Assembly: GCA_002269645.1 (NCBI GenBank)
Contig: NIVC01002314.1
Coordinates: 120,491 to 184,490, forward strand
DNA from: Macrostomum lignano
Lineage: Eukaryota
Direction: 5' to 3'
DNA: 64,000 nt
Below the pieces are notes generated by a model. It was not told where the DNA came from. It ran no database searches and saw nothing but the letters and a program-made list of their open reading frames with translations. Below, in pieces: positions 4,866 to 63,519 of this stretch. The position numbers and the translations under genes are program-made. Position 1 is the stretch's first letter; every line of letters begins with the position of its first letter.

Positions 4866-9155
<4,290 letters not shown>

Positions 9156-26829: not shown

Positions 26830-28212
26830 TTACTCGTCAGCAGGCGGTATATCCTCTTCCTCTTCATCGGCCCCCTCTTCCATAAGCTCCTCCTCCTCCT
26901 CTTCTTCATCATCGTTCGCAGCCTCTCCCTCTTCTTCTTCTTCATCATCATCGTCTTCCTCAACCTCCTCGGCTGGCTCCAGCGCGGCCAATCTGGCCGT
27001 TCTGTCGGCCAATTCGGCCGGATTGAAATCGCGATGTCGGACAACCAGTTTAGTTTTCGTAGTCGGCGCACCGCCGGGCATGCCGATTTTTCTACGCTTA
27101 CTCAATCGAACTCGGGTCTCTAATTCGTTATAATAGACGCCGCCTTCTCTAAATACAAAGAAGTAATTCTCGTCGTAGCCTTTCATACTCTTATTCTTAA
27201 CGTTCCAATTGTACTCTCTGTTAAGTTCGTACTCGTAGACATCCTCGGCTACGTAGGGTAGGCCAGCCTCCTGATCGCGCTTCCGCTTAGCTCTGGTCTC
27301 CCTAGTTGGCAAGAAGTAAGCAACGAACTGATCGCCAGACTCGTCGACCATGCCTCGAATCATTGCCTGGGTTACATCGTCGGATAAACCGGACTGATCC
27401 TTCGGAGTCGGATCGGTGTCGAAGATCACCTGTGCGCACGGGTGCTGCCAGAGTTGAAAGTCTGGCAGCAGAGGCATCACCTGGACGGCGTGGACTCCGC
27501 GACGGCTATAATGCTCCTCTACTGGTCGCTTGGTGGCTTCGAATGTTTTCTCAATAGCTTCAATCTGTTTCTCCTTGGTCTTGTAAATATCTTCGGCCTC
27601 GCTAAATACTTTGTTCTTAAGATTGATCTTCGATTCAATCTTATCGCTAAACACCTGGTTCTGTCGATTAGCCTCATTAGAGATGTACTCAGTCTTGCGC
27701 AGCCAGGAGGCTTTCATCCTGTCGTGCCGGGACGCACGCTGGTGCAAACCGCCAGGTCCGGTCTCGTCGGCAACCAGAGCCTCATCTTCGGGATCTGGCT
27801 TAGCAACTAAAGATGTTTGATAAGTGTCCGGATTCACTAAGTCAATGTCGATGCCTAAGTCCAGCTCAGTAAGCAGTTCGTGCTTATATTCTTTCTCTAA
27901 CGAGGTCGTATTGTACTTTACAAATCGACCGGTCTCAAACGGATAGGCTAAGAATTTCGGATCAAATGGAATGTCTGGCAAGCTGTTGCAATAGCGAACC
28001 CGACAGATTAGACCACTCTCCTGCTTGCGCTGGCTGGCTTGTCCGCCAGAAGAGGCCGACGAAGGTGCAGGAGAAGCGCCTAGCGAAGACCTGCTAGAGG
28101 AGCCGCCAATGGAACTGCGATTCTGCTGCTGCTGCTGCTGATGTTGACGCCTCGATCCACCACCCGGAGTGGTTGCCGGAGACGCGGTCGCGCCAACAAT
28201 AGTCGGTCCCAT
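26830..28212 (-). CDS. PAF1: RNA polymerase II-associated factor 1 (PAF1 complex subunit), intronless, 460 aa
   Basis: MGPTI start (cf. MAPTI), ICRVRYCNSLPDIPFDPKF, TSLEKEYKHELLTELDLG, SWLRKTEYIS, HPCAQVIFDTDP, NREYNWNVKNK, YYNELETRVRLSKRR and acidic tail. The ORF-track start at 28233 is TTG; the first ATG is 28212. Confidence 0.96.
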   Translation of the reverse strand: MGPTIVGATASPATTPGGGSRRQHQQQQQQNRSSIGGSSSRSSLGASPAPSSASSGGQASQRKQESGLICRVRYCNSLPDIPFDPKFLAYPFETGRFVKYNTTSLEKEYKHELLTELDLGIDIDLVNPDTYQTSLVAKPDPEDEALVADETGPGGLHQRASRHDRMKASWLRKTEYISNEANRQNQVFSDKIESKINLKNKVFSEAEDIYKTKEKQIEAIEKTFEATKRPVEEHYSRRGVHAVQVMPLLPDFQLWQHPCAQVIFDTDPTPKDQSGLSDDVTQAMIRGMVDESGDQFVAYFLPTRETRAKRKRDQEAGLPYVAEDVYEYELNREYNWNVKNKSMKGYDENYFFVFREGGVYYNELETRVRLSKRRKIGMPGGAPTTKTKLVVRHRDFNPAELADRTARLAALEPAEEVEEDDDDEEEEEGEAANDDEEEEEEELMEEGADEEEEDIPPADE

Positions 28213-28852
28213 TGACAACCAGTAATAAACCAACTATAATTTAATTCGATTCTAAATACAAGTTTATATTTAGTTGTTTGCAAGGGTATAAATAGGACAG
28301 CTGAATTGACCGTTGAAAAACAGAGCTGAAATGTTGAAAACAGACAAATTCTCAGTTATTAATAATTAAAATCACGTGAAAACTTTTAAACAATCTTACA
28401 CTGAAGGTACATTTCTATAGGGACTTTAGTTTAGGCTACAGTTACACTTTAATCTAGGAGCAAGTAATTGATCTTTTTATCAAAACTTTCAACTAAAACT
28501 TGCGTTATCTAATTCAGCTTTGAAGGTCATATTATTTCTGTTAAACCTGTTCACTAGCAAGAGAGTACAGCTCTATCTAATAAATGTAGGCGGGACACTA
28601 AATAGACAACAAAACAAGCAGTGAATTATTGAATTAATTTATATATTTGTTTTCAGTTAAGGTGCAAAATTAAGCGTCTTTAATTGGCGTCATCAAGAAA
28701 ACTAAAAAATGGCGGATGGGATGAGCTAGCTAGCTCTGCAGTCAACAAAGTTGCAAGCCAGAGCAAAATGAATAAACTCAATACATTTAATAATGAAAGA
28801 AAATGGACCAGGAGCCAATGCAAGCGATGCCTTATTCAACTATTATCACAAA

Positions 28853-35468: not shown

Positions 35469-37416
35469 ATGGCAACGGCGCTTGCTCAGCAGCCCAATGA
35501 GGGCAATACATACACCTTTTCGAGTCAGCCCAGAGCTGTTCCTAACCGACGAAAATACCGAGATCAGTTTGCACAGCAGTGAGTCAACCATCGAATGCTT
35601 GACTTTACTAATTAATTTTTTTTCAACTGTAAACCATAGCGAGTTCTAGTAAAATCTAAGGTTTGATGCTTCAAAAATTAATAGCTAGAATTAATCCGCT
35701 GAATGCAGACAGTTTTTGTTCTTGGGAAAGTATTGCAACTGATATACTACGCTCGTATTTACTCTGCTTTTGCAACATTTGACGCCAAAAAACTAAAGCA
35801 ACTGCATATAATCGAAAAAATAAGAAATTAATTTACGTTTTTTATGCGAATAGTCATTTTATTATCTGGTAACCGGCTAACCGCTTCCTTTATTGAGGTT
35901 ATTTTATTCGATAATCAAGACAATTTTCACTATACTCGCGCAGGAACTCGGATGAGGTGCCGCATCACGGCAACTTGATGTACGACAGGCGAGTCATTCG
36001 GGGCAACACCTACTCGCAGCATGTGCTGCCTGCAGTGGCGCAGCCCGATCCGGTGGAAATTCAACGCCAGCAGGAGATGCGAAGGCGCGCCATGGCTAGG
36101 AAGCGCGCACGCGAGCAGCTCCGACCAAAGTCGCCAGAAGCCGTCGAGGGCAGGAAGCACATTGACATCCAGACGGAGCTGTACCTAGAAGAGCTGGCGG
36201 ACCGAATCGAGGAGGCCGACGTTCAATGCCAAACTGACGACTTCCTTGACAGGCCCCCGTCGCCGCTGTTTGTCCCAGCTAAAAGCGGGGAAGACAAGGA
36301 GACTCAGATCCTTGACAACGAGGTAAAGATTTGGCGCAATATTTATTGCCTAATTTCTGACTTGCTACCAGAGTATCATCAACCATTGACCTCACTTCCC
36401 CCTCCCCCTGTTTCGATGCAGCTGTTCAACTTCGACATCGAGGTCAAGCCCATCCTGGAGGTGCTAGTTGGCAAAACCATTGAGCAGTCACTGCTGGAGG
36501 TCTGCGGCGAAGAGGAGCTGGCCAACCTGCGGGCCCAGCAGCGCGCCTTCGAGGAGCTGCGCAACGCCGAGCTCGTCGAACAACAGCGACTGGAAGAGCA
36601 GGACAGGCGCCATCGCGAGGAGAAGGCGCGCCGTGTTCAACAACAGCGCGAGGTGCAAGAGAAAGAGCGCGAGACGGCGAACAAAATCGCGGCGCGAGCT
36701 TTCGCCCAGAGCTACTTGGCCGACCTCGTGCCGTCGGTGTTCGGCACCCTGGCAGAGCACGGATATTTCTACGATCCCGTGGAGCGCGGTGAGTCACTTT
36801 TCCATCATCGTCACTTGGAATTGGTCATTTGGATTGGCAGAAGAACGTTCTTTACGTTAGATGAGGAGTTTCTACTCGTAACGGTCAGGCATGTCATGTT
36901 GTCTCGGCACATTCACGTCACGTATTTTGACTCCGTGGACCTAAGGAGATAACAAGTGGCATTTTCTCCTTGATCTGACCTCTTCTAGACGTGGAGAGCG
37001 GCTTCCTGCCCTGGCTGGTGGATGCTGTCAACACCGACATCGATTCCTCCGTGCGCGCCCGCGCCCTACTCGACGGCCTGCTGCGCGAGGTGATTCGCGA
37101 CCGGCACACCGCCTACCGCGCCCTGGAGACGCGAATCGAGCAGCAGCGCATGGCCGAGGAGGACCGGCGCGCCATGGTTGATCCATCAGCTGCCGCCGCC
37201 TCCGAGACTCAGTCGCAGCCGCGAGACGAAGACGAAAACGACGCGATGGCCAACCTGGAGGCGACCGGCGCGCCAGGCGATGCGCCTGATGCCGATGCCG
37301 ACGATTCAGCGGCCGCTAAGGAGGCTGAGGATGCCGGCGATGCCGACGCCGAGGGCGAAGCCGACGGCGAGGGCGAGGCAGACGCCGACGGAGGCGACGG
37401 CGAGGACGAGAATTAA
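35469..37416 (+). CDS. RSPH3: Radial spoke head protein 3, 4 exons: 35469-35578, 35944-36322, 36422-36788, 36989-37416; about 427 aa
   Basis: TYTFSSQPRAV, HGNLMYDRRVIRGNTY, EAVEGRKHIDIQTELYLEEL, QTDDFLDRPPSPLFVPAKSG, LFNFDIEVKPILEVLVGKTIEQSLLEV, and YFYDPVER|DVESGFLPWL across a phase-1 intron; GT-AG junctions in frame. Confidence 0.95.
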
Positions 37417-51177: not shown

Positions 51178-53452
51178 ATGCAGAAATCCCACAGCAAGCG
51201 GCTCGCCCCGCCAGAGGCCTGTCTGGCCGGCGTGGTGGCCGCCGAGGCCATCCCGGAGGGCCAGCGGACCGGACGGCTGGCCGAGGCGCCGCAGTTTGCC
51301 CGGACACTGCGCGACGAGCGACAGGTCGCGAACTTTGTAGCGGTAAGTCTTTTAGTTGGCGTTTTGGGTAACAGACGAGAGTAACTTGACTAAATATCCC
51401 TGCGCTTAGATGGGGGGGGGGCGAACTCCGGCCCGCGAATCCTCTCTATCCGGCCGTCGGGTCCTTTGAAACTTCACAATAGCAATCTGGCCCGCTCAAG
51501 GTTCGTCTCTTCTCTCCCCTCTTCTCTCCTCTTCTCTCGCCTCATCTCACCCCTCTTCTCTCCCCTCTTCCCTCCCCTCTTCTCTCCCCTCTTCTCTCCC
51601 CTCTTCCCTCCCTCTTCTCTCCCTCTCTCCCCCTCTCTCGCCTCATCTCACCCCTCTTCTCTCCCCTCTTCCCTCCCCTCTTCTCTCCCCTCTTCTCTCC
51701 CCTCTTCTCTCCCCTCTTCTCTCCCCTCTTCTCTCCCTCTCTCCCCTCTTCTCTCCCCTCTTCTCTCCCCTCTTCTCTCCCCTCTTCTCTCCCCTCTTCC
51801 CTCCCCTCTTCTCTCCCCTCTTCTCTCCCCTCTTCTCCCCTCTTCCTCCCCTCTTCTCTCCCCTCTTCTTCTCTCCCCTCTTCTCTCCCCTCTTCTCCCC
51901 TCTTCTCTCGCCTCATCTCACTTCTCTTCTCTCCCCTCTTCTCTCCCCTCTTCTCTCCCCTCTTCTCCCCTCTTCTCTCGCCTCATCTCACTTCTCTTCT
52001 CTCCCCTCTTCTCTCCCCTCTTCTCTCCCCTCTTTTCTCCCTCTTCTCTCACCTCATCTCTCCCCTCTCTCTCCTCCTCTTCTCTACCCTCTTCTCTCTC
52101 TCCTCTCTCCTCTTTTCTCTTCATCCCATCTCTCGGCCCTCTCTTCTCTTCTCTCTCATTTTCAATTCCCTTCCCTTATCTGCAGGCATGAGCTGAATTC
52201 TTTATCTATAGCCCTTCAGGTAAAAAGGTTTGTCCGGGTAAACGGCGTGAGTAACTATTACTACTTTATGATATTTAAATGCTCCGTCATCTAAGTAGCT
52301 AAATGCGAATGCTTCCACCAGGTCCGCCCGGTGTTCCGTAAGCAGTCGACGGATGTCGGAGGCATCGTGGACGAGCAGGGCGGCTTGGCCTGGGTCACCC
52401 GGCTGCAGGGGGCGCGCGACCGGGCCGAGCAGAATCTCGAGCTGCTGCTACAGGAGGATCCGACTGAGGAGACGCCGGAGGGAACTCGGAGGGGATTTTG
52501 GTTGAGAGCGACTCGCGAGATTCGACCCGGAGAGCAGCTGCTGGTCTGGTTTTCCGACGCTTGCGCCATGCAGCTGGGAGTTCCCGTGCTGTCTGTGCTC
52601 AACATCAGAGGTGAGCGAGATGGGATCGGAGATGGGATCGGAGATGGGATCGGAGATGGGATCGGAGATGGGATCGGAGATGGGATCGGAGATGGGATCG
52701 GAGATGGGATCGGAGATGGGATCGGAGATGGGATCGGAGATGGGATCGGAGATGGGATCGGAGATGGGATCGGAGATGGGATCGGAGATGGGATCGGAGA
52801 TGGGATCGGAGATGGGATCGGAGATGGGATCGGAGATGGGATCGGAGATGGGATCGGAGATGGGATCGGAGATGGGATCGGAGATGGGATCGGAGATGGG
52901 ATCGGAGATGGGATCGGAGATGGGATCGGAGATGGGATCGGAGATGGGATCGGAGATGGGATCGGAGATGGGATCGGAGATGGGATCGGAGATGGGATCG
53001 GAGATGGGATCGGAGATGGGATCGGAGATGGGATCGGAGATGGGATCGGAGATGGGATCGGAGATGGGATCCTATTTCGGAGATCAAATCTCAACATGAT
53101 CAAATTGTTCCCTTCACCAACCCGCAGCGCATCACTGCTACCAGTGCCACCTGTGCCAGAGGAAGTTTCTCCACCCGAACGTGCTCAAGGCGCACCTGAT
53201 GCACGCATGCACCAGCGACTCGCTGCACCAACATCAGCAGCACCGCCTGGCCCCTCCACCGCTCCATCTGCCGTCGCCGCACCCGCTGCAGCTTCAACAG
53301 TTGCAGATGCAGCTCCAGCTGCAGCTGCAGCTTCAGCGCGGCATTCTCGAGTTCGCCGCCAACCATCGGGTCGCTCCTCCGCCGGACCTGCTCGCCCTGC
53401 TCCGCCGGTTCGGCCAGCAGCCTCCGTCATCTGCACCGACGCTGCCACCGCC

Positions 53453-53483
<31 letters not shown>

Positions 53484-54158
53484 CAGCTGATGTCGAAGCC
53501 GCGCCATCGCCGACCCTGGGAGGAGGATGATGACGTCATTGTCGATCACAACGACGACGAGATGCAACAGCAGCAACAGCATCAGCATCATCGTAATCAT
53601 CGGCACACGACCTCCTTCGACTGCAGCGTCGCGGGTAGCACAGCATCAACGTCCACACCTTCGTCGACGCCGAAAAAGTTGGAGCCCCCGACTGTTGATC
53701 GCCAGCAGCAGCAGCAGCAGCGTCAGGAGAAGGACGAGGAGATGGCCGAGTCGCCGCTGATGCTCCGTGACGTCAGTCCGACTCTGTCCGCTGTCGCTGC
53801 GCCGTCAGCCATGGAGCTGCCCAGCGACGCGGAGCCTCTGGACCTGATCCCGCGCTCGCTGTACACCTGCAAGTCCAACAAGGGCCACCTGTGCATCTAC
53901 TGCGGCAAAGTGTACTCGCGCAAGTACGGTTTGAAAATTCACCTGCGAACTCATACCGGCTACAAGCCGTTGAAATGCCGCGTCTGTCTGCGGCCGTTCG
54001 GCGATCCCAGCAACCTGAACAAGCACATCCGCTTGCACGCCGAGGGCGACACGCCGTATAGGTGCGAATTCTGCGCCAAGGTGCTGGTCCGCCGGCGCGA
54101 CCTGGAGAGGCATCAACGCTCGAGGCATCCGGACCGACTGATTATGATGGGGAAATAA
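51178..54158 (+). CDS. PRDM13: PR-domain zinc finger protein 13, 3 exons: 51178-51342, 52322-52610, 53128-54158; about 494 aa
   Basis: PR/SET domain ([39 protein letters not shown]), first finger [24 protein letters not shown], and C-terminal fingers [72 protein letters not shown], characteristic of PRDM13; GT-AG junctions in frame. Confidence 0.93.
51503..52165. repeat. Polypyrimidine tract built on a 12-nt unit (CTCCCCTCTTCT), PRDM13 intron 1
   Basis: About 660 nt that are almost exclusively C/T on the sense strand. Confidence 0.93.
52617..53071. repeat. Perfect 12-nt minisatellite (GAGATGGGATCG), about 38 copies, PRDM13 intron 2
   Basis: No variant units seen within the array. Confidence 0.97.
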
Positions 54159-54536
54159 GCTCCAGAAACCTTGATTTCTACTTATATGAGTAGCATAGTT
54201 AGTAAAACTTTATTTAACTTCCTTGAGAAGCTTATCAATAACTTTTTTAAATTATAACAATCCCTTTCATTATTGAAATTGCAACAAGACTCTAATAAAA
54301 AAATTTAACCAAGCATCCGTGCGTACATGTCTCTTGCGTGTTTTTGCTTTCAGTTCTGCTTGCTTTTCGTCACGTTTAAAATTATTGATCTCTTAAATAT
54401 ATGAAATTTAAATTAATAATAAATTAGCAAATGCACGATCATATTATTTCAATGCTATGCTATGCATGTCAATGCTTCTTACCGATCAACATCCAGCGGC
54501 TTGTACTTTAATTTTCTGGCTTGAAGAAAATATCCA

Positions 54537-55769
54537 TTCTGTAGCAGTAGGTAGGGATTCTGTAACAGTAGGTAGGGATTCTGTAACAGTAGGTAGGGAT
54601 TCTGTAACAGTAGGTAGGGATTCTGTAACAGTAGGTAGGGATTCTGTAACAGTAGGTAGAGATTCTGTAACAGTAGGTAGAGATTTGTGTAACAGTAGTT
54701 AGGCATTCTGTAACAGTAGGTAGGGATTCTGTAACAGTAGGTAGGGATTCTGTAACAGTAGTTAGGCATTCTGTAACAGTAGGTAGGGATTCTGTAACAG
54801 TAGTTAGGGATTCTGTAACAGTAGGTAGGGATTCTGTAACAGTAGTTAGGGATTCTGTAACAGTAGGTAGGGATTCTGTAACAGTAGGTAGAGATTCTGT
54901 AACAGTAGGTAGGGATTCTGTAACAGTAGGTAGAGATTTGTGTAACAGTAGGTAGAGATTCTGTAATAGAAGGTAGGATTCTGTAAGAGTAGGTAGGGAT
55001 TCTGTAACAGTAGGTAGGGATTCTGTTATAGAAGGTAGGATTCTGTAACAGTAGGTAGGGATTCTGTAACAGTAGGTAGGGATTCTGTAACAGTAGGTAG
55101 AGATTCTGTAACAGTAGGTAGGGATTCTGTAACAGTAGGTAGAGATTTGTGTAACAGTAGGTAGGGATTCTGTAATAGAAGGTAGGATTCTGTAAGAGTA
55201 GGTAGGGATTCTGTAACAGTAGGTAGGGATTCTGTAACAGTAGGTAGAGATTTGTGTAACAGTAGGTAGGGATTCTGTAACAGTAGGTAGGGATTCTGTA
55301 ACAGTAGGTAGGGATTCTGTAACAGTAGTTAGGCATTCTGTAACAGTTAGGTATGGATTCTGTAACAGTAGTTAGGGATTCTGTAACAGTAGGTAGGGAT
55401 TCTGTAACAGTAGGTAGGGATTCTGTAACAGTAGTTAGGGATTCTGTAACAGTAGGTAGGGATTCTGTAACAGTAGGTAGGGATTCTGTAACAGTAGTTA
55501 GGGATTCTGTAACAGTAGGTAGGGATTCTGTAACAGTAGGTAGAGATTCTGTAACAGTAGGTAGGGATTCTGTAACAGTAGGTAGAGATTCTGTAACAGT
55601 AGGTAGGGATTCTGTAACAGTAGGTAGAGATTTGTGTAACAGTAGGTAGGGATTCTGTAATAGAAGGTAGGATTCTGTAAGAGTAGGTAGGGATTCTGTA
55701 ACAGTAGGTAGGGATTCTGTAACAGTAGGTAGGGATTCTGTAACAGTAGGTAGGGATTCTGTAACAGTA
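54537..55769. repeat. 21-nt minisatellite (GGGATTCTGTAACAGTAGGTA), about 58 copies
   Basis: Direct tandem repeats. Confidence 0.96.
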
Positions 55770-56259
55770 AGTGCAGGGCATTGTTGAAAGACTTCAACAA
55801 TGTGAAATTTCAAGCTTTTAAGTATCGAGCCAGTGAAAATGGCCTGCTGAATGATTTGGCAGTCTTGTCTTGTGTCTAATTTGTCTATGGCTGAAACCCA
55901 CCGAAGGTAATACCGCTGTTCATGGGCGAATTGATTGCCAACGAAAGCTTTCTCGCGAACTATTGTTATACAGCAATAATTTAACTTATATAAATTATAA
56001 CAATAATTTATTGTTATAATTGAAGGATGGCACGTCAACATGACAAGCCGAAGTACTCCACCATGTGGGGCATGGAGTACACTCACAACGGTAATTTAGT
56101 CACACTGCGCAGTCATACGCCTAGCGTAAGATTTCGCGTTATTGGCGAGTCTCAAACGGAGACCAGGGATGCATTTGAGACTTTTGCGGTGCCCAACAAG
56201 CAACGATCTCTGCCTGTGGTGAGTCTGGGGTTGCGGCGAATGCAATGTTAGAGGGGCCT

Positions 56260-56580
56260 GCAAGAGCCGCCAGCAAGAAGCGCCAGCCGAAACTGGCGCC
56301 ACCATAAGAGAGGCGCCACAAGCAATGAGGTGGCGCACACAGTAGTGAGGGGTGCCACCCAGCAATGAGAGGCGCCACCAGCAATCAGAGGCGCCACCAG
56401 CAATGAGAGGCGCCACCAGCAATGAGAGGCGCCAACAGCAATGAGAGGCGCCAGCAGCAATAAGAGGCGCCACCCAGCAATGGGGGCGCCGCAGACAATG
56501 AAGGGCGCCAGCAGCAATGAAGGGCGCCAACCAACAATGAGGGGTGCCACCCAGCAGTGAGGGGCGCCATAAGCAATGAG
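56260..56580. repeat. 19-nt minisatellite (GAGGCGCCACCAGCAATGA), about 16 degenerate copies
   Basis: Direct tandem repeats. Confidence 0.88.
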
Positions 56581-56712
56581 GAGCGTCACAGGAACGAAGA
56601 TGAAGGCAGTAAAAATAAAAGAGCTGCATTGACGTATGCTATTCAGCAGAAACATTATATTTATGATGCCTGATATACAAGCTACTAATGATAACAATTT
56701 ATGCATTTTTAG

Positions 56713-58925: not shown

Positions 58926-60375
58926 ATGAACATCGCGCTCTCTCACCATTCCTGCCGTTGGTCATCCATTCACCCTTGGTGTGCTGTACAACAGCAGGAC
59001 CAGCCAAATCATCCCCGGAGTCAAGTTATTCACCACTGAGCAGATGCAGGCTATGCTGACCGAAACTAAGAAAATTAGCATGGAGACCGATATCGTCACA
59101 GAAACGTCAGCGAACAGCAAAAACCTGAGCACAAAAGTGACTGGAAATCTGTCGCTGTCAATTTTATCGGGACTAGTTTCGGCTAAAGGCTCCGGGAACT
59201 ATCAGACTGCATTAAAAGAGAAGAAAGAGACGGAGAGTGCCATATATCGATTGCAAGTTCAAGGAAAGTATTGGGAACTTGTTCTCCCACCAGATTGGAA
59301 GCTGAAGAGCTCAGCGAGCTACAAAGATGCGACTCACGTAGTAATGGGAATTCAGTACGGCGGAGCCGCACTGTTCTTCTTTGAGCGGGACAGAGAAGAC
59401 TCCGCAACGAGCGATAAAACCGGAGGCCGTCTGCAAGCTGATATTGGCAAGTTTGCATCGGTGGTCAGCATCTCTGGAGCTGCCTCGCTTGACATGACGT
59501 CGGAGGAAACAAAAGTCCTGCAGAAGATCCGGGTTGCCTACAAAGGAGACTTCCACCTGGCCAGCCCACCGACCGACTTCATTGAAGCCATGAAGTGCAT
59601 TCAAACAATCCAAGCGGCTGAAGCTAGATCGCCACTGACGGTCACTCTGCTTCCTCTGTCACTGCTGGTTGAAGACGCTCCACCAGCTCCCCTGCCACTA
59701 CCGCGCACGTGCATCTCTAAAACTGTTCGCTGCTACGATGTGCTGAAAGAAGCTCTGACTACTCTGGAGGAAATTACTTACAAGCTGAGACCGACAGCGT
59801 GGACTCACGTGGTGAAGAAGCTGGAAGCGGAACTTCGGGAGCTCGAATCATTCAAGTCTTCCCTTGATGATGTTGTGAGGGAAGCTGTTCTAGATCACAC
59901 GGCTGAGCCTGCTAATCGTGCGAAAAAAATTGAGTTAAAAACTGGCCTTTTTGACGCTGGAAAAAAGTACGCTTACCTACAGGAATGGGCCACCGCAGTC
60001 GCCGATGCCGGTGACGTTCTGGTTGTGATTTCCAATAAGTTCCGGCAGTCTGGCGCCCAGATAATTAAAAGCCAGGCCCAGAGAGCCGAATTCATCATGA
60101 GAAGCATGACAGAACAAAAGCAAAAGATGTACTGCCTGTCTTGCCCAATGAAATTGTTTGAACTGCAAAACTTCAAGCTCCAAGCTGGACTGAAACTCTG
60201 GAGCGATGAAGAACTGGAGAAGAAGTTTTACAAAGCGTTGGTAAAATACTGCCCCAGGCCAGGAAATCAAAAACAGAAATTTGAGCAATCTCTAGCGGCT
60301 GTTGAGCAATCCGAGGTTTCTGATTCTGATGCATCCGGAGTGCAGGTGATCTTCCAGAACCTCTCATTAAATTAA
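58926..60375 (+). CDS. Stonustoxin/verrucotoxin-like pore-forming protein 1 (about 480 aa); ATG out of frame by +1 with the conserved N-terminus (pseudogene or indel)
   Basis: PAVGHPFTLGVLYNSRTSQIIPG (cf. AALGRPFTLGMLYDAR..LIPG), LSGLVSAKGSGNY, ATHVVMGIQYGGAALFFF, YKGDFHLASPPTDFIEA and PLTVTLLPL; then a helical region and a short THX-like region, with no PRY-SPRY. ATG at 58926 reads ATG-A-ACA. Confidence 0.8.
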
Positions 60376-60689: not shown

Positions 60690-60990
60690 GGAGAGTGGAG
60701 TCTAGGTCTGTAGCCTATCGGTTAGGCGGTTAGCAACCCACTAAGAACAATTTGTATCCTTGAGCAAGACACCTAACTCTGCATTGCTTCAGTTCTCCCA
60801 GCTGTAAAATGGGTGCTGCATTAGCTGAGGTAATTGAGGGTGTGTGTGGCGACCCCAGCCCTTGAACTGAACAGCCGTACGCAGCCTTCAGATGCGCCGC
60901 GCAATAGCTGCGGCTGAGCTGTCGGTTGCACATCTAGGTAGGTGGTATCAATTAAAATAATAATAATTATTATTATTATTACTATTATTG
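60690..60990 (+). mobile_element. CORE-type SINE copy with eroded tRNA head and (TAA/TTA)n tail, between the two SNTX-like genes
   Basis: TCCTTGAGCAAGACACCTAACTCTGCATTGCTTCAG..CCCAGCTGTAAAATGGGTGC..GAACTGAACAGCCGTACGCAGCCTTCAGATGCGCCGCGCAAT matches the reverse complement of 23555-23845. Confidence 0.8.
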
Positions 60991-61492
60991 CTATTATCAT
61001 TAATATTATTATTATTACTAATAGTCGTAAAATACACTCTAATTAAATGTTAATTGGAATCAGATTGGTAAAAGTACTATAAATACGATTTCTCATTGTA
61101 CTCGTAATATATACTCTCAGTTCTAGTAACAAAATCTTTACATAGTACGAGTACTATTAAAATATTTATGAATATGAAACAGGCATATTTTGTTCGCTGT
61201 CACTAAACCTTAAGTATGTAATCCAGCTTCTTTTTTTTCAATAAAAGTTAATAAAAAAATACGGATTGTTAAACAAAAAATGTTTTTCTTCTTCTTTTTT
61301 GGATTAGTGCACTAGGAATCATATCAGCGGCAGTCGATAGCTTGTATCTTCTTCTTAGTATAATTTTAGTACTCTCGAGATAAAACATTGACCCTTATTG
61401 GAGAAGTTGCTAGTAGGCTTATTAAATGGCGGAACTCGCTCTAACAACCATCGGCCAAACATTTCAGCACAATCCTGACGAACGACTTCAAC

Positions 61493-63519
61493 ATGCAAAC
61501 TCAACCGGAGTGCATCCTGTCTCTGGGCCGGCCGTTTCAGCTCGGACAGCTGTACGACATCCGACAGCACCGGATCATTGCACAGTCGGCCTGGCCATCT
61601 GATCGAATTCGGAAAATGACGACTCGGCTGGATGATGCGCCCAGCGTGAGGTTTTCTCTGGACTACGAGTACAGCTCGAAACGCCGAGCGGAGCAGCTGG
61701 GGCTGAACGCCCAGCTGAGATTTTGCATTGAGTTCAAAGCGTTGTGGTGGACAGTGTACGAGAAGACAATGACAGGATCAGCAAAATACGTCACGAGGCA
61801 AGCTCCACCGAGACCAGTGGAAGCGTCACTTTGCAGTACGACGTGAAGAGTGCGTTTGAGGAGCTTCAGTACTGCAACGAGCCTGTAGACAATGAGAAGA
61901 AGTTACTAAGCATTGGTGCAACGCACGTTGTGACAGGAATCAGGTACGGAGGCAAGGCGTTCATTGTCTGCAAAGGCTGGTCCAATGCGTCCAGCTTCTT
62001 CGAGCGAGCAACATCTGACTGTCATGAACTGGTAGATTGGAAGGTGGAACAGTGGATCAGAGATGCTGGGCAGTCTGCCAGATCGTTCGCTCAGTTTGGC
62101 TTGCCGAACCGCTCTTCAAGTTCTGGCAGTTATCAGATCGAGTGTCACACAGACTTCAAGCAGCCAAGGAAGACAATGAGAGAGCCACCGGATGTTTTAG
62201 AGTATTTTAAATCCTTGGATTCGAGGGATGCGAATCAAGCAATGGAAATCCATCTCACTCCATTGTGCTACTTTTGCCCGTCGGTTCCAGCTTCAGTCCC
62301 AATGACAAAAACGCAACATCTGGAAGATGCCTGCCAGTACCTTCAAGCGTTGAAGGCTGGCTTTGAACATTCCGAGCAACTTTTGGACAAGATTAGCCGG
62401 GAGGCAGAGTTGAACATTTCAATCGGAGAGACACTGAACGGATACAATAGAGACCTGGACACTCATGTAAACGAGTACACACAGCGGATGCAACAAAGTT
62501 TTGTGAATCATCGCACTTCGGACGAGTTTGCTGAAGCTCATCACGCCGGCAGTTTAGACAGCGTCTTCACCTACACCAGCATGGACACCTCTTTGAACAT
62601 GTTTGGTCGCCAAACTACCGACCTCTGCGATTTAAGTGCAAAGCTTCGACAGGGTATTGACGCTACAAGCGCTGAAGAACTTGAGATGAAAGCAGAAAGA
62701 TTGGCAAAGGAAATAGAGGACCTTTTTAGCATACACAACTCAAGCAAGCAGCTTGAAGAGCAAATGTCCCCAGGACAGAGCAACTTTAGAATTAAGCGCA
62801 CCAGAATCGAAGAAAGAAGTCGGGATGATCGGTCCTGCATCACTTGGTGCATCAGGTGTCGAAGTACGTGCCATGAAGACTGTGGCTATTCCAATAACGA
62901 GGATAAAGCAAAGTGCTGTGCCATGAACAGTGATGGATACTGTAAAGAGTGCGGCTGCTACTGGAGACTTCACCGAAACACCAGCACCGAACAGAGGGAG
63001 TTTGAATACTACGAATCTGTTCCCATTGACAAAGTGAGCAAGAAGTATGGAGAAAATACAAACCAGCGCGGTGCTGCGAGGCGTCTCAAGTATCACCTAG
63101 GAATGGACGCGAAGATGGCTTTGCAGAAAACGGCCTACAAACTCGTGAGTGCTCACAGGTGCTTGAAAGGCCTGCACCAGGACGTCAACTTGGATCAGTT
63201 CATTAGAGACAAGCTTCGGTCCAAGCGGCTGGATCCGGAAGATTCCTCCAAGTTGATTGAACTGACCAAAGCTATCGATGCACGAGTTGAGGATAGAACC
63301 GATTACGCTAGGTTTGAATGGCAGTCACGACTGCCGGAACGTCCGACAACGCCGCCGACATTTGGTGCAGTCGGTGCAGACAGTACAGGCAGTGGTACGG
63401 CTCGTATTGGTGCAGCAGTCTTTGGTGCCGGTTCATCCGATTTGTATCGTTCTTTGTACGGTGGGCGACAAAATCGGGATTCAAATCCCCAGTCTGATCC
63501 GGATTGCACTATTAGTTGA
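61493..63519 (+). CDS. Stonustoxin-like pore-forming protein 2 with a C-terminal Cys-rich module and CaaX box (about 675 aa), interrupted by a 1-nt frameshift near 61791
   Basis: Frame 1: LSLGRPFQLGQLYDIR..GSAKYV; frame 2: HEASSTETSGSVTLQYDVKSAFEEL, ATHVVTGIRYGGKAF, ECHTDF and MEIHLTPL. Restoring one base gives GSAKYVHEASSTETSGSVTLQY, matching the spacing of SNTX GSAKYL..VTLQY. Ends DCTIS-stop. Confidence 0.8.

Follow-up and report, generated by a model that had tools for sequence, protein, structure and literature searches.

A reduced SNTX-type MACPF gene of Macrostomum lignano with a conserved Cys/His module and a terminal CTIS box suggests a membrane-tethered intracellular pore-former

The SNTX-like locus and its second genomic copy

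The DNA analyzed here is a 64,000-nucleotide stretch of the genome of the flatworm Macrostomum lignano, referred to below as the window. The gene of interest, SNTX-like gene 2, lies on its plus strand at 61493-63519. Its product consists of an N-terminal pore domain of the stonustoxin (SNTX) type, a helical bundle, a Cys/His-rich module with flanking helices, a low-complexity linker and a terminal CaaX prenylation box, CTIS. The locus is a reduced member of a widespread, uncharacterized eukaryotic family, and the order of its domains together with the CTIS end suggests a predicted membrane-tethered intracellular pore-former.

The gene is found in two pieces. The first (61493..61846, plus strand) runs from the start Met at 61493 through 117 codons to a stop at 61844-61846, and an in-frame stop lies 17 codons 5' of the start. 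The second is a 591-codon open reading frame (ORF) at 61744-63519, also on the plus strand, whose frame differs from that of the N-terminal 117 codons. The break maps to 61780..61799, where the window has one single-column length difference from an intact second copy, and it falls where TMH1, the first helical cluster of the pore domain, ends. The domains and the tail that the original prediction described are present, but their continuity is not, as the window copy is split by a frame break that this first reading had not seen.

The second genomic copy is locus L001 on contig NIVC01004600.1, whose identity to the window is 95.7% over 5.3 kb and 98.7% within the coding sequence. There a single 2052-nucleotide exon encodes an intact protein of 683 residues, P0001 (BOX15_Mlig004669g4), which ends in DCTIS, is 97% identical to the window protein and is its paralog or an allele of it. 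Global alignment of the two coding sequences reveals 27 substitutions and one internal gap column. The frame change is not explained by an intron, because the second copy is collinear and differs at 61780-61799 by only that one column. The break in the window reflects either a lesion in a pseudogene or an indel of the assembly; if it is real, the full-length protein is made from the second genomic copy only. The two pieces of the window copy were searched separately, and the intact P0001 was used for modelling.

An SNTX-type pore domain followed by a helical bundle

The SNTX/MACPF domain (ILSLGRPFQLGQLYD...) begins 8 residues after the start Met, at the SNTX-type motif LGRPFQLGQLYD. Because the domain begins directly after the Met, there is no room between the two for a signal peptide. 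The first piece matches, at E 1e-36, a hidden Markov model (HMM) of the SNTX domain built from relatives, with P0001 among its five seeds. The rest of the MACPF/CDC domain (61800..62292, plus strand) is in the frame of the 591-codon ORF and contains the MACPF signature ATHVVTGIRYGG at 61918-61953, which is of the type [YW]-G-[TS]-H-[FYV]-x6-G-G. The T, H and G of this signature are invariant across the 18 SNTX-type sequences of alignment A2.

Evidence from sequence comparison with known proteins is weak. A phmmer search of Protein Data Bank (PDB) sequences matched a stonustoxin chain, 4wvm_B, at E 3.6e-4. A Pfam scan of both window pieces and of the neighboring SNTX-like gene 1 returned nothing significant, and neither piece matched the MACPF_SNTX family (PF24674), whose cut-off is passed by the relatives P0046, P0061, P0003 and P0007 from the same alignment.

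The structural evidence comes from an AlphaFold (AF2) model of P0001 residues 1-456, calculated from the alignment of 18 SNTX-type sequences with a predicted local distance difference test score (pLDDT) of 68 and a predicted template modelling score (pTM) of 0.67. Its top Foldseek matches are the two stonustoxin chains, 4wvm_B (E 2.2e-13, template modelling score (TM) 0.58, 388 columns) and 4wvm_A (E 6.7e-12). After these come Toxoplasma PLP1, pneumolysin, MPEG-1, perforin and C8; besides the two stonustoxin chains, nine MACPF/CDC structures are found at E<1e-3. Identity to stonustoxin over the structural alignment is only 16-18%. The model places two helical clusters, TMH1 and TMH2, each of about 50 residues, between the core strands. 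As modelled, the N-terminal half thus has the stonustoxin/MACPF fold, with its bent central β-sheet and two helical clusters. The protein belongs to the SNTX branch of the MACPF proteins by fold and signature, not by Pfam threshold.

A helical bundle follows the pore domain at 62311..62658 on the plus strand (helices 282-397 of the P0001 model). It occupies the position of the helical (FAT-like) domain of stonustoxin, and the Foldseek alignment to 4wvm_B has 388 columns. The Pfam family of the stonustoxin helical domain, PF21109, was not detected.

A conserved Cys/His module with flanking helices

The Cys/His-rich module lies where the original prediction had placed it, with its first Cys codon at 62836-62838. 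It extends over 62836-62979 on the plus strand (CITWCIRCRSTCHEDCGYSNNEDKAKCCAMNSDGYCKECGCYWRLHRN) and has 48 residues, 10 of them Cys and 2 His, in the pattern C-x2-C-x3-CH-x2-C-x10-C(C)-x8-C-x2-C-x-C-x4-H-x-N. A long helix at 62671..62781 (plus strand) precedes it. This helix is equivalent to the post-GTPase helix of full-length relatives and has a weak match to the mitofusin HR2 coiled coil. In the AF2 model the helix is followed by a long β-hairpin (62782..63024, plus strand) that clasps the Cys knot, and then by three to four helices. These belong to a C-terminal helical bundle (63025..63327, plus strand) that accompanies the module throughout the family. The mean pLDDT of the module model is 84.7, rising to 88-93 over the module itself. 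A loop motif that follows the module in the family, IALxPNPLS, is missing from the window protein.

To collect relatives, all of 1.84 billion cluster representatives (clusters at 50% identity) were scanned with HMMER at E<=1e-3. The scan found 427 representatives of the module family, nearly all of which align only to query residues ~300-480. A word-seeded search returned the near-identical copy only, and 5 proteins when it was started from the module alignment; it was left out of the family surveys because it had missed known members. In a 31-member alignment of the module the invariant columns are T, C, C, C, H, C, K, C, C, C, C, H and N, and all 13 are present in the window protein. The family consensus is C-x2-C-x3-CH-x2-C-x7-K-x2-C-x8-C-x2-C-x(1-3)-C-x4-H-x-N, and the family HMM, whose seed alignment includes the window sequence, matches the window ORF at E 8e-43.

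Across the 30-odd members scanned, the module is not covered by any Pfam family. A profile search of the module alignment against PDB sequences yielded coiled-coil noise and the Nore1 C1 chains (1rfh_A and 2fnf_X) at E ~0.6-0.8, and a Foldseek search with the confident C-terminal model gave a best match of E ~1, with no PDB relative by fold. The first knuckle, C-x2-C-x3-CH-x2-C, produced sub-threshold matches to C1_1 in five of ten family modules (E 0.011-1.3). C1 is a zinc finger that binds diacylglycerol and phorbol esters. The module of the window protein itself has no C1 match, even below threshold. As far as sequence conservation can tell, the Cys/His module is a real, conserved and undescribed domain. 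It probably binds two zinc ions, for which the number of its ligands is sufficient.

Family architecture and the absence of the GTPase

Representatives of the family occur in fish (Gouania, Toxotes), a frog (Bombina), bivalves (Dreissena, Potamilus), a coral (Porites) and a ciliate (Tetrahymena). In the family at large the module nearly always comes after a septin/AIG1-like GTPase, and an SNTX domain frequently stands before it. Of the 150 best representatives, 29 have an SNTX domain at the N-terminus, or 30 with P0019, whose match is weak and partial. The usual order of domains is SNTX, helical, thioredoxin-like, fn3, GTPase and module. A septin/AIG1-like GTPase with a GATGxGK[ST] P-loop precedes the module in 24 of the 29, and the module usually lies ~290 residues after the P-loop. 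Two of these relatives, P0003 and P0061, are from M. lignano itself. The statement in the original prediction that a similar Cys-rich module follows septin/AIG1-like GTPases in SNTX proteins is thus confirmed.

The window protein lacks the GTPase. The P-loop pattern [AG]xxxxGK[ST], a relaxed Walker A pattern and NKxD are all absent from both gene pieces, and no GTPase family of Pfam matches either piece or P0001. The distance from the SNTX domain to the module is 141 residues, compared with 650-1080 in GTPase-bearing relatives. It is the shortest seen, the other SNTX-plus-module relatives having 331-1086, and leaves room for no more than the helical bundle and the pre-module helix. A spacer too short to hold a GTPase indicates that the domain is truly absent from the flatworm protein, and the original prediction, which had noticed the missing P-loop and proposed a protein without the GTPase, was right on both points.

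The loss is not unique to this gene. Five of the 29 SNTX-plus-module representatives (P0013, P0109, P0039, P0014 and P0042) are also without a GTPase. All five keep the helical and thioredoxin-like domains, four keep fn3 as well, and they could be natural GTPase-less forms or exon-skipping gene models. The link of an SNTX pore domain to a CaaX box is also found in P0046, a cnidarian-like SNTX+GTPase+module protein that ends in CVIQ. Of all forms seen, that of the flatworm is the most reduced, with SNTX domain, helical bundle, module and helices, linker and CaaX box, and without thioredoxin-like domain, fn3 or GTPase. After P0001 its next family match is at E 2e-15, and the searched library holds no closer relative.

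In the literature library searched, which is incomplete, we found no description of the SNTX+GTPase+module family, of the module or of a prenylated MACPF protein. Searches of it for MACPF with GIMAP/AIG1 and for Macrostomum with stonustoxin likewise yielded no description.

The C-terminal linker and the CaaX box

About 115 residues of predicted helices separate the module from a low-complexity linker, probably disordered, at 63328..63504 (plus strand; 59 residues rich in G, S, A, T and P). The linker leads directly into the CaaX box C-T-I-S and its stop (63505..63519, plus strand), with the box codons at 63505-63516 and the stop ending at 63519. Both linker and terminal CTIS are thus on the sequence as originally described. 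The box has Cys exactly four residues from the C-terminus, an aliphatic residue at a2 and Ser at X, where S, M, Q, A and C were counted as residues that select for farnesyltransferase. The predicted context suits prenylation, with no signal peptide and a flexible linker of 59 residues before the box.

The statement that CTIS is also the farnesylated CaaX box of human GBP1 proved correct (PMC2998424). Human GBP-1 is prenylated, and deletion of CTIS takes it off membranes; green fluorescent protein (GFP) carrying only CTIS is directed to the Golgi, and this membrane localization is sensitive to farnesyltransferase inhibitor (PMC2998424). GBP-2 and GBP-5 end in CNIL and CVLL (PMC2998424).

The survey of tails covered 124 family representatives whose C-terminal region is complete. 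Cys stands at position -4 in ten of them, and in zero to three at each of the other last 20 positions. Against a tail Cys frequency of 0.94% this is an approximately 8-fold enrichment. Including that of P0001, the boxes are CIIV, CVIQ, CIIF, CSIF, CDLL, CNIL, CTIA, CLIF, CTIS, CQLC and CFAR, and a2 is Ile or Leu in 10 of the 11. Their carriers do not form one clade; they comprise a ciliate group (P0002, P0054, P0124 and P0071), the frog protein, whose box is CNIL, P0046, two unplaced proteins and the flatworm protein. The CTIS end is identical in the second genomic copy, and 92% of the 124 relatives have no CaaX box.

Other tails are rich in Trp/Phe and Lys/Arg. They make up 25 of the 124 (20%), compared with 2.9% of internal 15-mers, an enrichment of ~7-fold. 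Stretches such as WWQFW, KFWGRK and WFGFF occur in the C-terminal 15 residues of proteins within P0003-P0150, and two examples of such ends are ...KKWWQFWC and ...RFKFWGRK. They suggest an alternative, non-lipid membrane-binding tail, and two tails resemble transmembrane anchors. The enrichment of Cys at -4 and the aromatic/basic tails together suggest that C-terminal membrane binding is a selected trait that recurs in the family, a trend that CTIS fits. The full family plan would then end in a variable C-terminal membrane-binding tail.

The neighboring SNTX-like gene and the rest of the window

A second, divergent SNTX-like gene, gene 1, lies on the same (plus) strand ~1.1 kb upstream of gene 2, at 58930-60375 in the window and at 7344-8899 in L001. 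Its product has a helical region and an SNTX domain, the latter matching the family HMM at E 3e-53; it has neither Cys module nor CaaX box and ends in ...QNLSLN. The ATG and the domain are in different frames in the window; in L001 the ATG is in frame and another frame break lies in mid-gene. The product of gene 1 is a possible partner subunit of the gene 2 protein.

The intergenic region between the two genes contains an (ATT)n-type microsatellite and AT-rich stretch at 60966-61017. Further upstream, a tandem array with the 21-bp unit ATTCTGTAACAGTAGGTAGGG occupies 54536-55769 in the window (58.7 copies) and 1684-2051 in L001 (17.7 copies), a large difference in copy number between homeologs or haplotypes. 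In the window this array sits within a 535-codon minus-strand ORF (54479-56086). A 12-bp array, GAGATGGGATCG, is present at 52617-53071 in the window, with 37.9 copies, 100% matches and overlapping ORFs on both strands, and at 1-219 in L001; a 19-bp array at 56295-56589 occurs in both copies. Other genes in the window are those for Paf1 (26830-28233, minus strand, E 5e-130), a folliculin-interacting protein middle domain (6031-7044, minus strand), radial spoke protein 3 (35957-36952, plus strand) and a C2H2 zinc-finger protein (53181-54158, plus strand).

Interpretation and alternatives

The reading that we consider best, with a probability of about 0.5, is that gene 2 encodes a farnesylated cytosolic protein that is tethered by its tail to the cytosolic face of a membrane, where its MACPF domain then oligomerizes and inserts. 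Because it has no signal peptide, the protein would be synthesized in the cytosol. Farnesyltransferase would modify the Cys of CTIS, after which the -TIS tripeptide would be cleaved and the Cys carboxymethylated. The farnesyl tail would fix the C-terminus to the cytosolic face of the membrane, and the higher local concentration brought about by tethering would allow the N-terminal domain to oligomerize and insert. A lipid tail would take the place of folded C-terminal membrane binders such as the C2 domain of perforin and domain 4 of cholesterol-dependent cytolysins. The Cys module and its helices may act as a stalk or assembly element inherited from GTPase-bearing relatives, and nucleotide control would have been lost along with the GTPase.

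Several observations weigh against this reading. For the pore domain, the match of P0001 to Pfam MACPF_SNTX reaches only 20.3 bits (E 3.5e-4), below the curated cut-off of 27, the TMH2 region is partly modelled at low confidence, and many MACPF proteins form no pores. The nearest relatives besides P0001 are only ~25% identical. For the anchor, a CaaX box is present in only 8% of relatives, and the last 20 residues before the box contain neither a polybasic stretch nor a second, palmitoylatable Cys; the farnesyl group alone would give only weak, endomembrane-type binding. Finally, the window copy is frame-broken, and pN/pS between the two copies is ~0.76, a value that does not clearly signal purifying selection and that rests on 23 substitutions, too few to decide anything.

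This last pair of observations bears on the strongest alternative, to which we give a substantial chance, though one short of even odds: the window copy may be a young pseudogene, one of the redundant copies in polyploid M. lignano, with its CaaX end a relic. One internal indel relative to the intact copy puts a stop after 117 codons, the pN/pS ratio of ~0.76 speaks for it, and gene 1 next door likewise has a break in each copy, not at the same place. In total, three of the four gene copies examined (SNTX-like genes 1 and 2 in the window and in L001) carry one isolated frame break each. One isolated indel per otherwise open copy fits young pseudogenes in a polyploid genome, but we think that the same pattern would also fit indel errors of a long-read assembly. 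Its single indel aside, the window ORF runs for 591 codons without a stop, with 98.7% identity to the intact copy. A pseudogene in the window would touch that copy only, as the architecture is intact in P0001, and is compatible with the tethered pore-former as the reading of the other copy.

It is improbable, in our view, that CTIS is fortuitous and that the protein is soluble, or released non-classically like the stonefish toxin, without a lipid anchor. The rarity of the box among relatives and the lack of a second membrane signal would fit such a protein, and stonustoxin-type proteins are generally known to act extracellularly despite having no signal peptide. A chance box, however, accounts poorly for a Cys spike exactly at -4 or for an a2 Ile/Leu preference across the family's boxes. 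The flatworm box also ends a long flexible linker, as in proven substrates, and the identical tetrapeptide suffices for farnesylation-dependent targeting of GFP (PMC2998424). A further alternative seems rather unlikely: the short protein would not be lytic but would serve as a regulator or partner subunit, pairing by its SNTX or helical domains with the gene 1 product or the GTPase-bearing paralogs and recruiting or holding them at a membrane. Two divergent SNTX-like genes stand head to tail 1.1 kb apart with an anchor in only one, full-length paralogs exist in the same genome, and the regulatory GTPase has been lost, all of which would suit a recruiting subunit; against it, the protein retains the MACPF signature and both helical clusters, with nothing to mark the domain as inactive.

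A membrane-tethered pore-former would be of interest beyond this locus. Perforin-type proteins have been known chiefly as effectors that are secreted or stored in granules and strike membranes from the outside. With a lipid-anchored member in the cytosol, the attack would come from the cytosolic side, and possible targets include pathogen vacuoles, cytosolic bacteria and, in a death program, the cell's own membranes. More tentatively, and with considerable doubt, the family might consist of undescribed cell-autonomous defense proteins of animals and ciliates that carry a pore domain, a GTPase switch and a membrane anchor, either a prenyl group or an aromatic/basic tail, in one cytosolic polypeptide. 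The flatworm form would be its natural minimal version, made up of pore domain, zinc stalk and farnesyl group and free of nucleotide control. If true, this would unite roles that in mammals are split between GBPs (targeting) and gasdermins (perforation). What the survey reveals is a large family for which no description was found, in which a pore domain is coupled to a GTPase and to a Cys/His module that lacks both a Pfam entry and a solved structure, and whose C-terminal tails seem to have gained membrane-binding motifs more than once. Being compact, made of one exon and part of the genome of a laboratory model species, the flatworm gene offers a convenient start for studies of module and anchor.

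Comparison with known systems

The best structural match of the flatworm model is stonustoxin (PDB 4WVM; PF24674, PF21109 and PF18078), which likewise has an N-terminal MACPF/CDC-type domain, a T-H-x7-G-G signature, a helical bundle and no signal peptide. In the stonustoxin heterodimer the MACPF domains of the two subunits interact (PMC10566576), and the flatworm locus resembles this two-subunit toxin in that a second, divergent SNTX-like gene adjoins the first. The flatworm protein differs from stonustoxin in lacking the thioredoxin-like and PRYSPRY domains, and in having the Cys/His module, helical bundle, disordered linker and CaaX box. Neither the thioredoxin-like (PF18078) nor the SPRY domain was matched in the window pieces or in P0001.

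With the SNTX-fn3-GTPase-Cys-module proteins (P0003, P0061, the fish protein P0007 and P0046) it has in common the SNTX domain, the module and the flanking helices. It differs from them in the absence of the thioredoxin-like domain, fn3, the GTPase and IALxPNPLS.

The CTIS box is the same as that of GBP-1, and the frog member of the family ends in CNIL as GBP-2 does. The two groups may share the logic of a prenyl group that brings a cytosolic immune protein to membranes. Membership of the GBP family was rejected because the flatworm protein has no GTPase: there is no dynamin-like GTPase, no detectable relationship to the helical domain of GBPs, no GBP match in Pfam and no GBP structure among the Foldseek matches. 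The resemblance is limited to the anchor. Compared with GBPs, the flatworm protein has no polybasic stretch before the box, and it carries a putative pore effector in the same polypeptide.

The plan in common with perforin and the cholesterol-dependent cytolysins is an N-terminal MACPF/CDC pore domain with a C-terminal membrane-binding element. In those proteins the binder is a folded domain that acts from outside, whereas in the flatworm protein its role would fall to a post-translational lipid that is carried by a flexible tail and acts from the cytosolic side.

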